Below, in pieces: positions 41,938 to 47,091 of a stretch of DNA of 64,000 bases. Below the pieces are notes generated by a model. The model was not told where the DNA came from. It ran no database searches and saw only the letters and a list, made by a program, of their open reading frames with translations. Both the position numbers and the translations under genes were made by a program. The stretch lies in NCBI GenBank assembly GCA_977016875.1, contig CDRNST010000008.1, positions 1,550,001-1,614,000 on the forward strand, in the 5' to 3' direction. How positions within the stretch are numbered: the stretch's first letter is position 1; the number at the start of each line of letters is the position of its first letter. This stretch comes from Pavona decussata. Its lineage: Eukaryota.

Positions 41938-43308
41938 ATCCATCACGTTAATTATTTGCCGTTCCGACACTCTTATATACAATGGACAAGGGTATCGATG
42001 CTGGCATTCTCCCCTTCAATGTCAAAGGTTAGTAATTATTAATGTTTAAAAAATATGAAGCCAGTTCTTGCCACGTTCTTTTAATTTGAGGGCTTGATCG
42101 TATTCGACTCCTGTCATGACTTTTTCATGTTTAATACAGTTAAGCTTATGTGTTTGGCTTTGATAGATTGGAGTCCTTCTTATCTGAGAGCGTGGATGGC
42201 AGATCAGGCTGCAGTGTTCAAAGAAGAAGAGGTTTTCAAATTCAAAGGTTTTTACTCTCTCCATTGTATTTTGTGGTTTAATTTGTGTTTCGCTTCGATT
42301 TGTTTGTGTGGTCAAAGTCCGGGGGTCAAAATGTAGTTTTCCGTGGCGACATGTCACAATTGCGATGCGGTGAGTTAAGGCTTCAGTTTAAAAATACCTG
42401 ACAAAAGATTCTACCTACAGGGCCTTTCACATTCCCAAGATGTATTAGCGAGCTGTACCCTCTGTTAAAATGTAATTTTGGTTGACCTTTATATATAAAG
42501 TATAATTTTTTTGTACTGAAGGAGCCGAAATCTCCAGAAGGACCCTTGAAATGGTTGACAGAAACGTCTTAAAGGACATTGACAGCGGGAAATAATTCAG
42601 GCTTTTAAACAACTTACTCAAATACAAGGTAAGTGAAAATTTACACTTCCAATAGACTGTTAAAGCATTATACCATCCTCCTTCTATTAAGCCCTACTCG
42701 CTCCCCTTTTCCAGGCACATATGAATATGCCCTCTCATCCTGACAGTAACTTAATGAAATTATGCTTTTCATCTGTTGACTTTATACTTAAAATACAGGC
42801 CACTGATTGTCAATATTAATCAACCAGTAGTTTCCTTCAAGCTTGCATAAAAAAAAAAATTGGTATACACAGTACAGTCAACTCTCTCATAGCGAGCACT
42901 CCTCATAAGCGACCACCTCCCGTAACCGACCACTTCGTAAACAACCGTTTTGTCTCTCAGTTAAATACTGTTCCAAGAGCTCTCTCGTAAGCGACCACCA
43001 CTCAAGTTTCTAAAGGGACCGCGACCACTTTTTTGGCCAGAAATTTGACATTTTCTTTTGTTTTCTGTTTCCGGTAAGCGACCACCCAACATAATGATGT
43101 ATTATCGTTAGTAAACCACCACTCAGAAGTGACAAAAGTTCAATTTTTAATGATAGTACCCCGGACTGCTGACAGATAATAACAGTTTACCGACAGAGAA
43201 GATGGCTATAATTAGGTAGGTAGGTAAACTGGAATTGTTACAGTGATCTGTTCCAAAATGATATACAGTACAAAGTTTCATCAGAAGAAAAAATAGATTG
43301 CCCAGACG

Positions 43309-43752
43309 TTATTCAATGTGAAAAATGCCAGTGCTTTCAATCTTTTCCTTAAGCCATGGAATAGAAATGTCATTGTCTCTGTAGAAAATGTAACTGCAGG
43401 GAATTTCCAGTCCATAGCCTGCTCCTCGATTTACACGTTTTCCTGTTATAATGGCCTTTCAATTGTTGGTCCTTCATTTCAAAAATTTGCTAACATACTG
43501 AGACATTTGTAATGGTCTGTGGCCGACAATCTCATCTTCTTTTGACACGGTGTTGGGATGTTCGGCTGCAGTAAAATTTTTCGATAGCGGCCTCACTACT
43601 GCAACCGCATTTCCATCTTTTTCATTTAGTGGCTCACGTTTCAGTCTACGTTGCTCACCAATCTCGGGAACCCATGTTGTTTCTTCCTTGTAGACATGAT
43701 AACCTCGTATGAATGAATGGACCGTGATGCTTGAAAAATTCTTTCCCTCCAT
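43309..43752 (-). pseudogene. Stand-alone HIRAN-domain protein (147 codons, two in-frame TGA stops)
   Basis: MEGKNFSSITVHSFIRGYHVY..IGEQRRLKREPLNEKDGNAVAV..IVGHRP..SKFLK*RTNN*KAIITGKRVNRGAGYGLEIPCSYIF. L.REP.N..D.NA..V and .G..P are HIRAN signatures. Confidence 0.8.
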
Positions 43753-43825
43753 GTCGGCTTGAAACGGAGCGAATTGATGCTGAATGATAAGCAAATGACG
43801 AAGATTTCCAGTTCTGTTACTGCAT

Positions 43826-45805
43826 GTGTTACTCGTTGGTTGCGTGGTGGGTGTTCAATTTGATTGCTGTCTGCACTTTGTATTCTTAACACGTGAGCTA
43901 AAGATAAAATACTCGCGGGAATTTCTCACATTTGTACATGCACGTGTGCTCAACAGAGGCATTTTGGAAGTCTTAAAGATTTGTCTGAAGTGTGCGAAAC
44001 CTGTGTGTAACAAGTCTAAAGAATGTTCGTCCCCTGCTGACGAGGACAGCCCAGGCTGGAAAGCCGGTGTATCGGTGGCTTATTGCCTTTCTTGTTCTGA
44101 CGTGGCGACCACGAAGGTGACCAAGCAAGCAAGAATTCCAGTTAAGGACATCAAACCAGTTACAAAGAAATCCACAGAGAAGAAGCCACCAATGCCCCCA
44201 GAAGCTAGTGATGGTCAAAGAAAATGTCTTTCCCTGAAAGAAAAAGTAGACGTCATCCGGAAATCTAACGAGGGTAACAGGACGAGAAAATTAGGCAAAA
44301 TGTTTGATCGCGGGGAAACACAGATCGTCAAAACCCTGAAGCAGAAAGCTAAGATTCTCGAATCGTGGAACTCTAATGAAGGCGCACAATCTCAAAAGAG
44401 ATTGAATGTTGAAAAGTATGGCGAAATCAATGGTTTGTTGTGGAAATGGTACACCAGACCAAGGGAGTCAAATATCCCTGTTGATGGCCCCATGCTGATC
44501 GAAGAAGCGCGAATCATAGCTGAGAGAATTGGAGATGACACATTTAAAGGAACAAGTGGTTGGTTAGACAAGTGGAAAAAGAGACATAACATCGGCCAAA
44601 TGAACATTGCTGTGGAAGGGGGAGATGTAAGCCAAGAGACGATAAACAGCTGGAATGAAAGAGTGAAAGAGCCAACTAGGGGCTACTCACCGAAGGATAT
44701 ATGGAATGAGGATGAAACTGGCTCTTTCTGGAAGGCGATGCCTCAGAAGTCGCTCTCTCAAAAGGGGAAACGCTGTAGGGGCGGCAAGAATGCGAAGCAG
44801 CGAATAACTGCTGCGTTCTTTGTCAATGCAGCGGGCGACAAAGAGACCCTTATTGTGATAGGAAGTAGCAGATTACCGCGCTGCTTTGCACGTTTGGCAA
44901 ATCCATCGTATCCCTGCGGTGCCCAGTACTTCAGCTACAAGAAGGCGTGGATGAGAACCGAGATAATGGTTACTATCCTTACCAGGTTGAACAACCGTCT
45001 GAAAAGAGAGGACAGGCATATTATCCTCTTCTTAGACAATACACCATGCCATCCACCCTCGCTGACGGACATGTTCTCCAACATTAAAGTGGCCTTTCTA
45101 CCGAAGAACACCACCTCGCGCACGCAGCCCCAGGATGCAGGTATAATCAAGGTGTGGAAGATCTACTACAAAAGGAAGTTGCTGCGGCATATCGTTAGTC
45201 AAGTTGACGAAGAACATTCTGCCAGCGAGATAGTAAAGTCTGTGAACCTCCTAATGGCCGTGCGATGGATGGTAAATGCGTGGAACGAAGTCAAGAGCGA
45301 GGTGATCAGTAAGTGTTTCAGACATGTTGGAATGGATTTGGATGAAGATGACGATGACCCATTTGCCGGTGAGGAGTTACTAGACCTTGAAGCCCTGGTG
45401 CAGAAGATGTCTAAGAAAGGTATTGACGCTGCTCCCTACGCTGTCTTCGACGATGATGCAGATGCCTATCACTCCTTAGATCCCGCCGACCCTAACTGGA
45501 AGGAGACCCTACGAGATGAGGTTATCGCTACTCACTCAAACAGTATCAAGACAGAAATAGCAACTGGTTCCGACAGTGATGATAGCAGTGACGATGCTCC
45601 TTTACCAATACCAGCGGTGCAAGGAGTAAAAGGAGCACTCGATCTAGTGCGTCAGATCGCTGAGTTTGCAGATTATCGGGGTTGTGAGGAGTTGTCCACT
45701 GCAGTCACGAAAGTGTCTGATATTCTGGTTGACATGAGGCTTAAGTCACAGAGGCAATCGAGCATTCTAGACTTCGTGGATAAGGGGTCGAATGCGACCG
45801 AGTAA
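43826..45805 (+). CDS. Tigger-like transposase (HTH-psq, CENP-B HTH, DDE_1, DD32D) with Cys-rich N-terminal extension
   Basis: Open 659-codon frame: LSLKEKVDVI, GWLDKWKKRH, NEDETG, FLDN, QPQDAG (32 residues between D2 and D3). True start uncertain. Confidence 0.92.
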   Translation: MLLVGCVVGVQFDCCLHFVFLTRELKIKYSREFLTFVHARVLNRGILEVLKICLKCAKPVCNKSKECSSPADEDSPGWKAGVSVAYCLSCSDVATTKVTKQARIPVKDIKPVTKKSTEKKPPMPPEASDGQRKCLSLKEKVDVIRKSNEGNRTRKLGKMFDRGETQIVKTLKQKAKILESWNSNEGAQSQKRLNVEKYGEINGLLWKWYTRPRESNIPVDGPMLIEEARIIAERIGDDTFKGTSGWLDKWKKRHNIGQMNIAVEGGDVSQETINSWNERVKEPTRGYSPKDIWNEDETGSFWKAMPQKSLSQKGKRCRGGKNAKQRITAAFFVNAAGDKETLIVIGSSRLPRCFARLANPSYPCGAQYFSYKKAWMRTEIMVTILTRLNNRLKREDRHIILFLDNTPCHPPSLTDMFSNIKVAFLPKNTTSRTQPQDAGIIKVWKIYYKRKLLRHIVSQVDEEHSASEIVKSVNLLMAVRWMVNAWNEVKSEVISKCFRHVGMDLDEDDDDPFAGEELLDLEALVQKMSKKGIDAAPYAVFDDDADAYHSLDPADPNWKETLRDEVIATHSNSIKTEIATGSDSDDSSDDAPLPIPAVQGVKGALDLVRQIAEFADYRGCEELSTAVTKVSDILVDMRLKSQRQSSILDFVDKGSNATE

Positions 45806-47091
45806 TGTAAATACAGTATCAAGATTTCAAATACTATGCACCCCATGTTTGACGTTGTTTTCCTATGTTTTGTTCGGTTTAAATTTCAGGTGATTTTAAT
45901 TAACATGAGACACATTGACAAGTACTGTACACTCCACTCTACTTTTCCCGAAACTTGTATGTAAAAAAAATCAAATAAATTAGTGTCTATTTGCCTAATT
46001 TTAGCTGATAAGGTAATCTGCTTATGTAATTAATCAATCAATCCAGTATTAGACTTATTTTGTTGATCTTTCCCGTAAGCGACCACTTTGTTGTGCACCA
46101 AGGTTGGTCGCTTACGAGAGAGTTGACTGTACTTTGACTTGGAGGGAAAGAGGAAATACAGTACTCAATAAATAAGTACTGAATATAATCTTCCAGAGCT
46201 TTCTTTTTAGCCAAGTTGTGATGTACCTGGGCAGCAATTACTATTAGACTTGACTAAGTTAACAAGAGTTATAGTTTCTTGAATGCTGCTAGAGAAAAGC
46301 CAAACCAAACAACAACCAATCAGTAAATGGAAAAGAAAAATAACACAAACAAACCAGAGCAGTTGGAGCGAAGCAAAAAAAATTTGTACCGTTCTAAGTA
46401 AGTAAAACAATAACACAAGCTAACAAGCAAAAAATAAATAACTTGTCCATGTAAACAGCATTTCAAATTGATCATATTATATTCTAGCCTTTTGCAATAT
46501 GGCCTGGAAACCACAAAATCTACTTCAAACAGAATCCGGCTGATACCTTAAAATTAGAGCTTACTGAAAAGCTGGCAGAAACATGCTCGGTGGAAGATAT
46601 TGCTTTTGGAAGAGGTTAGTCAAGGCTGTGTTCTGAGAACAATTAACGGTGTCAAAGGTTCCCAAACCCCCAGTAAATTTTTATGGTCACCCAAAAAAAG
46701 TTAGTCAACTGTGGCACCCGGGCATTGCTAGAGCACAGCCCTTTAGTGAAATACCATTTCCAAACAAAATGAAAAACAAGTGTTGAAATATAAATAAGCG
46801 AAACTATTTTTGGCAATATAATCAAACAGAAAAAGTACCAGCATTTTCTAAGAAAAGAGGAAAAGTAGTTTTGATACATAAAAACAACAACTTGGTTAGA
46901 GACAAGTACATGGTGTATGGATGATGGTTCAGACTGATGCTCTTACAAAACTTCTCAATATTCACAGTACCTGAAAATGCTCTGTCCTTGTAGGTGAAAA
47001 TTTTATTTATTTATAAGTTCTTGTGCTGCTTAAAGATCCTTGAGTTTTTACACAATATGTTTGCAGACATTACAACTTCACGCCAATTTAA

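Follow-up and report, generated by a model that had tools for sequence, protein, structure and literature searches.

A two-gene pogo/Tigger element in the Pavona decussata genome

The stretch of DNA analysed here (the window) comprises 64 kb of the Pavona decussata genome (C8:1550001-1614000; contig CDRNST010000008.1 of assembly GCA_977016875.1) and contains, at positions 42875-46129, a pogo/Tigger element that is flanked by TA and whose inverted ends are of the CAGT type. Two genes diverge from a spacer within this element: a transposase gene on the plus strand and, on the minus strand, an open reading frame (ORF) that encodes a small HIRAN-only protein. Tc1/mariner/pogo elements are the textbook minimal transposons, consisting of one gene and two inverted ends. 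The window holds, in a defective copy, a cut-and-paste DNA transposon of the pogo/Tigger type whose lineage has an integral second gene. This gene encodes a stand-alone HIRAN protein of ~140-160 amino acids (aa), is kept by selection and lies divergent to the transposase gene inside the terminal inverted repeats (TIRs). Our genome searches covered the whole assembly (602 Mb, 1180 contigs), and the counts derived from them are lower bounds since only the best candidates were scored.

The boundaries of the element are marked by the 19-mer TACAGTCAACTCTCTCRTA, which has two exact occurrences in the window, at 42873-42891 on the plus strand and, inverted, at 46113-46131 on the minus strand, against a chance expectation of 0. 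This inverted pair, with TA on both sides, bears out the extent proposed for the element in an earlier first-pass annotation of the window, made from the letters alone. The element tips read TA then CAGTC at the start and GACTG then TA at the end. The TA target-site duplication (TSD) is located at 42873..42874 on the left and at 46130..46131 on the right, and TA flanks are also found at at least 20 other copies with differing flanks. The left TIR core, CAGTCAACTCTCTCATA (42875..42891, plus strand), extends imperfectly to ~26 nucleotides (nt) and pairs with the right TIR core at 46113..46129 on the minus strand. The element ends additionally contain six occurrences of the 12-mer GTAAGCGACCAC, compared with 0.14 expected: four subterminal direct repeats on the left (42905-16, 42922-33, 42987-98 and 43074-85, all on the plus strand, spanning 42905..43085) and two on the right (46075-86 on the plus strand and 46104-15 on the minus strand, spanning 46075..46115). 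These repeats are probably transposase binding sites.

Elsewhere in the assembly, we found one other full-length copy of the element, a number of long copies that are truncated or interrupted and 93-95% identical, and many miniature inverted-repeat transposable elements (MITEs) of 570-680 bp that are made of the two ends of the element (L009-L030 and many more places, with 959 candidates at first look). Since the copies lie in unrelated flanking DNA and have TA borders nearly without exception, the window family has transposed.

The transposase open frame spans 43826..45805 on the plus strand, with the first remaining ATG at 44192. Its product matches three Pfam families above their cut-offs, namely CENP-B_N (PF04218, 36.5 bits, 44216-44365), HTH_Tnp_Tc5 (PF03221, 53.2 bits, 44420-44596) and DDE_1 (PF03184, 104.1 bits, E 8e-30, 44795-45319), and the nearest named protein, 'tigger transposable element-derived protein 6-like' of Montipora foliosa, is 91% identical to it. 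Counted from the ATG at 44192, the catalytic residues are D174 (44711-13), D282 (45035-37) and D315 (45134-36), with 32 residues between the last two, in agreement with the DD32D transposase that the first-pass annotation had read on this strand; all three are invariant or at least 90% conserved among 34 sequences. Transposases of the family are 621-626 aa long and possess a conserved Cys-rich N-terminus (CxxC x8 CxxC x4 C ... CxxC), an extension that looks like a zinc finger and for which no Pfam family was matched. At the opposite end of the protein is a motif resembling the PCNA-interacting protein (PIP) box, QSSILDFV (45755..45778, plus strand), with V at position 8. The relaxed pattern Qxx[ILMV]xx[FY]x is present within the last 40 residues in 29 of the 34 transposase relatives, where many of the motifs have the canonical form (Qxx[ILM]xx[FY][FY]), such as QSTITDYF and QTTITEFF.

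Both genes are defective in the window copy. Alignment with three sister copies revealed that a 39-bp deletion after 43978 has removed the family transposase ATG and 13 codons, leaving the gene without its start codon, and the HIRAN ORF contains two in-frame TGA codons. With the family ATG restored in register, the spacer between the divergent start codons is 226 bp (43753..43978), whereas 439 bp separate the HIRAN start codon from the first ATG left in the window copy. The spacer of about 200 bp or less that had been described for this element is therefore right for the family but not literally so for this copy. We presume that the spacer is a bidirectional promoter.

The minus-strand gene encodes a stand-alone HIRAN protein

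The HIRAN-only ORF (43309..43752, minus strand) runs from an ATG at 43752 to a stop codon at 43309-43311 and comprises 147 codons plus stop, as originally read; it is a pseudogene in the window copy, with TGA at 43474-43476 and at 43459-43461. A short intron in place of these two stops was ruled out, given that they are 12 nt apart (18 nt with both codons) and that the sister copies read CGA and GGA, respectively, at these positions. Of the four sister copies with an intact ORF, three exceed the cut-off of the Pfam HIRAN family (PF08797, 24.7 bits) with scores of 26-27.5 bits, the fourth reaches 23.4 and the broken window copy 18.5. No Pfam domain besides HIRAN was detected in the 147-aa protein, from which the SNF2 motor and RING are absent.

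Structure prediction agrees with this assignment. The AlphaFold2 prediction, for which 41 members of the family were used, is confident (pLDDT 86, pTM 0.82) and contains the HIRAN fold, a six-stranded beta-barrel with two helices, and in a Foldseek comparison with the PDB the top 12 matches were all to the HLTF HIRAN domain, followed by the bacterial HIRAN protein Lp_0118 and then Rad5. The family profile also finds HLTF HIRAN (E 6e-4), aligning REPxNxxDxNA with RDPNNPYDKNA and VGHIP with VGHLK, while phmmer of a single HIRAN protein against PDB sequences gave no meaningful match. Structure comparison ranks the eukaryotic HLTF HIRAN above phage HIRAN proteins; a protein-atlas feature search pointed instead to phage and bacterial stand-alone HIRAN clusters. 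By profile and fold the accessory protein belongs to the HIRAN family, and because it has neither motor nor RING it is not an HLTF/Rad5 enzyme. It is further distinguished from these enzymes in being a stand-alone domain of 147 aa encoded by a mobile element, in which the counterpart of HLTF Y93 is not conserved.

In HLTF HIRAN, the 3'-OH is read by D94, with the last two bases pinched between Y72 and Y93 (PMC5773155, PMC4666394); an N90A/N91A mutation disables the domain (PMC11237066). In the transposon family, HLTF D94 and N91 correspond to D46 and N43, each with a conservation of 90% or higher, and the position matching N90 varies. At the place expected for Y72 there is an aromatic cluster, GYHVY, that is invariant, in an alignment that is not residue-exact. 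HIRAN proteins of the window subfamily carry an insertion of ~20 residues. We also observed a nearly invariant, family-specific motif, NRGAGYGLE(I/V)PC, at residues 107-119 (window ~43396-43434, minus strand), which is more conserved than the canonical HIRAN core.

HIRAN and transposase genes are paired throughout the genome

The HIRAN gene is not confined to the window copy. The HIRAN segment is present in all six long copies of the window family, with the 147-codon ORF intact in four and carrying a 1-bp frameshift in one. It also persists in shortened copies: a 1870-bp non-autonomous deletion derivative with TA duplications (L006/L008 on C409) has the HIRAN ORF intact and the transposase catalytic core lost (about 330 to 800, element coordinates), and older MITEs of the '1-521' type retain the last ~28 HIRAN codons, and thus descend from HIRAN-bearing parents.

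A six-frame search of the genome yielded at least 151 HIRAN matches, which include several diverged subfamilies at 46-65% identity, most of them stop-free. In 29 of the 30 HIRAN loci fetched, a pogo transposase was found on the opposite strand within the 1.5-kb flank, and the orientation was always head to head. Counted from the transposase side, a HIRAN match directly upstream, on the opposite strand, accompanies ~50 of ~66 distinct loci (a tally cross-tabulated by hand, by eye, from coordinates), and the exceptions are mostly fragments without the transposase N-terminus. One young subfamily comprises 13 HIRAN copies at 99% or higher amino-acid identity, of which 10 are open, and both frames are open at at least three loci, as read from search tables; these features suggest recent activity of the subfamily. 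Examples of its copies are found at C104:5693434-5696323, C2:2561187-2564076 and C144:6525719-6528608.

The gene pair is present in other cnidarians

A word-index protein search recovered 102 small HIRAN-only relatives at 33-96% identity, the named ones being 'uncharacterized protein' entries of Acropora digitifera and A. millepora. In eight of nine relatives' contigs (L031, L032-37, L068, L069, L070, L072, L074 and L077), HIRAN is located head to head with a pogo transposase, the ninth contig, of 2 kb, being too short for a judgement. The pairing was found in Acropora-like corals, Actinostola, Hydractinia and Tara coral metagenomes. Upstream of a named, 'tigger-like' transposase, and divergent from it, there is an unannotated HIRAN ORF in the sea anemone Actinostola sp. 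(L076, 3344-3772, minus strand) and in the hydrozoan Hydractinia symbiolongicarpus (L075, 3420-3875, minus strand), neither ORF having a gene annotation in the NCBI records, and a degraded HIRAN remnant is present upstream of the transposase in Stylophora pistillata. TA-flanked CAGT-type inverted repeats enclose both genes in L031, L070 and L074, so that, together with the window, the two genes occur inside TIRs in four genomes.

Two further observations concern the ends of these relatives. Repeats of the sequence CTCGTAAGCGG, which is related to GTAAGCGACCAC, are present in the ends of L031 and L070. In the distant relative L072, the 102-bp spacer holds a 24-nt palindrome that starts with ACAGTCAAAGGG and is like two abutting TIR tips (4923-4975); outer TIRs were not found in the region of L072 that was searched.

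The HIRAN gene is under purifying selection and co-diverges with the transposase

Between HIRAN relatives at 83-87% identity, dN/dS ranges from 0.21 to 0.32; in more distant pairs synonymous sites are saturated and pN is 0.25-0.45. When the GY94 codon model was applied to ten HIRAN representatives, omega was estimated at 0.12, with a log likelihood (lnL) of -3778.7 compared with -4009.3 when omega was fixed at 1 (kappa was also fixed). Neutral evolution of HIRAN is therefore rejected, and the gene is subject to purifying selection. Across 15 loci, near-identical pairs included, the pairwise identity of HIRAN correlates strongly with that of the transposase N-terminus (Mantel r 0.88, p 1e-4), which is what long-term linkage in one element predicts.

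These results bear directly on the possibility that HIRAN is a passenger, that is, a captured host gene fragment or nested insertion that is idle for the element, or a coincidental neighbour. DNA transposons do capture host fragments, and the closest fold is that of the eukaryotic HLTF HIRAN, ahead of the phage HIRAN proteins, as might be expected of a host-derived segment. However, in four genomes the TIRs enclose the ORF, which has no TIRs or TSD of its own, every long copy and many diverged subfamilies possess it, its 3' end is still held by old MITEs, and it co-diverges with the transposase under an omega that rejects neutrality. We consider a passenger highly improbable; as specific cases, a nested insertion and chance adjacency were ruled out, given that HIRAN lacks TIRs and a TSD and that the pairing is conserved. 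The proposal in the first-pass annotation that this is a two-gene element of which HIRAN is a real component is strongly supported by the retention of the pair across subfamilies and cnidarian classes, by its enclosure within TIRs, by co-divergence and by purifying selection, and we are confident that HIRAN serves the transposon as a functional accessory gene. None of the three findings named in that annotation as counting against it (HIRAN in this copy alone, TIRs or a TSD belonging to HIRAN, and neutral evolution) was borne out.

Purifying selection tells us that HIRAN has a function without telling whether it promotes or restrains the element, and HIRAN could in principle serve as a self-regulator, which restrains the element by competing for the 3'-OH ends used in strand transfer or by biasing repair of the donor break, sparing the host in the manner of transposon-encoded repressors. 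The divergent genes are presumably co-regulated, and the deletion derivative L006/L008 keeps HIRAN without the catalytic core, both of which would suit such a role. On the other hand, pure inhibitors seldom last so long in every active lineage, and HIRAN is intact in the young, expanding subfamily. We therefore regard restraint of the element by its own HIRAN protein as improbable.

A possible link between 3'-OH ends and PCNA

The Drosophila pogo transposase binds PCNA via its PIP-box, and the motif is kept in Tigger and Lemi1, where its function is unexplained (PMC5371812). By analogy with HLTF HIRAN, the transposon HIRAN protein would bind free 3'-OH ends of single-stranded or frayed DNA and, in conjunction with the PIP-box-like PCNA motif of the transposase, would tie transposition to PCNA-marked 3' ends. 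The ends in question would be those of nascent strands at replication forks or the 3' ends bordering the gaps of transposition, and possible effects include a bias in target choice or timing, or the handing over of intermediates to replication and repair. The suggestion in the first-pass annotation that HIRAN protects or targets 3' ends, or steers insertion to forks, is consistent with the HIRAN fold, the conserved equivalents of D94 and N91 and the PIP-box-like motif. Taken as a whole, a selected HIRAN second gene whose product would bind 3'-OH ends in a manner tied with PCNA is the explanation that we favour, with somewhat better than even confidence. That the HIRAN protein acts by binding 3' ends is probable to a similar degree; the version coupled specifically to forks and PCNA is tentative, and we think it rather less likely to be correct than not.

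Several observations weigh against the explanation that we favour. The position equivalent to HLTF Y93 is occupied by K or is variable in the family, so that the second stacking tyrosine is not conserved, and the mode of end binding may accordingly differ from that of HLTF. The PIP-box is an ancestral feature that also occurs in pogo elements lacking a HIRAN gene, and hence is not specific evidence for joint action of the two proteins. The window family itself looks inactive, with HIRAN broken here and a stop in the transposase of the other full-length copy, and in the young subfamily no HIRAN could be detected beside at least two of the transposase copies. Finally, the near-identical pairs in the comparison inflate the correlation between HIRAN and transposase identities.

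The main rival explanation retains 3'-end binding and dispenses with targeting. HIRAN would cap the 3'-OH ends of the post-cleavage complex, either the overhangs of the excised element or the donor break, and would keep the host HLTF translocase, resection and exonucleases off these ends until integration, acting as an end shield or anti-host decoy that competes with HLTF in a dominant-negative manner. Excision of the Tc1/mariner type produces short 3' overhangs, and we assume that the same holds for pogo. The transposon protein is HIRAN-only, without motor or RING, and conserves the equivalents of D94 and N91. Moreover, the isolated HLTF HIRAN (residues 1-180) binds the 3' end in the Cas9 post-cleavage complex and dominant-negatively blocks both HLTF-driven removal and resection (PMC11237066). 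Set against this, restriction of DNA transposons by a cnidarian HLTF is an assumption, the 3'-OH ends that are transferred lie, within the transpososome, in the active site of the transposase and may be inaccessible, and the conserved PIP-box would be left unused. Overall, we judge shielding of ends from the host to be unlikely, although less so than restraint of the element by its own HIRAN protein.

Relationship to known transposition systems

All the features of transposase and ends that were tested place the element in pogo/Tigger, of the pogo superfamily of IS630-Tc1-mariner, with which it shares the TA duplication, CAGT-type TIRs, the CENP-B_N, HTH_Tnp_Tc5 and DDE_1 domains, the DDxD triad with 32-residue spacing, the PIP-box-like C-terminus and the presence of MITEs. 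It departs from described pogo elements, which encode a transposase only, by its conserved opposite-strand HIRAN gene and by the Cys-rich N-terminal extension of its transposase. Two-gene DNA transposons are known in eukaryotes: PIF/Harbinger elements encode a Myb-like protein, and Helitrons carry genes for RPA-like single-stranded-DNA-binding proteins. The present element resembles these in having a gene for an accessory DNA-binding protein beside the transposase inside the element, and differs in its superfamily and in the fold of the accessory protein. In a survey of pogo-like diversity, extra ORFs are mentioned only for the ciliate Tec/TBE elements, Tc1/mariner/pogo elements being otherwise regarded as single-gene (PMC7325037). 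Our literature search retrieved no paper that joins pogo with HIRAN, and searches combining HIRAN with transposon terms gave nothing relevant.

The nearest functional parallel, by analogy only, is with Tn7, whose TnsE protein combines binding of a recessed 3' end with a sliding-clamp-binding motif and aims insertion at replicating DNA (PMC5371812). In the pogo element HIRAN would read the 3'-OH end and the PIP-box of the transposase would bind PCNA. There is no homology between the two systems, the two recognition functions reside on two proteins rather than one, and targeting in the present case is suggested by the analogy alone. A full eukaryotic counterpart of the TnsE pathway, in which HIRAN reads the nascent 3'-OH, the PIP-box transposase binds PCNA, and insertion or the timing of excision is directed to forks or primer ends, is in our estimate doubtful. 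If true, it would provide a replicative gain for a cut-and-paste element and would explain the long-puzzling PCNA motif of pogo transposases.

The maintenance by selection of a second gene across anthozoans and a hydrozoan implies that elements of this minimal type can depend on a dedicated accessory factor. The known biochemistry of HIRAN, which engages 3'-OH ends at stalled forks and nuclease-bound breaks, offers a handle on why pogo transposases bind PCNA, and also on whether the DNA transposons of eukaryotes respond to replication in the way that Tn7 and IS elements sense it. A HIRAN protein that is compact and naturally stands alone could in addition find use in probing 3' ends or in modulating how breaks are processed.

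Annotation of HIRAN genes and a neighbouring copy

In the cnidarian records examined, the HIRAN gene is either unannotated or listed as 'uncharacterized', and such entries may inflate host gene counts. At C8:1542549-1545057, ~5 kb upstream of the start of the window, lies a second HIRAN-transposase pair, which is degraded, with several stops, and belongs to another subfamily (56-61% identity).

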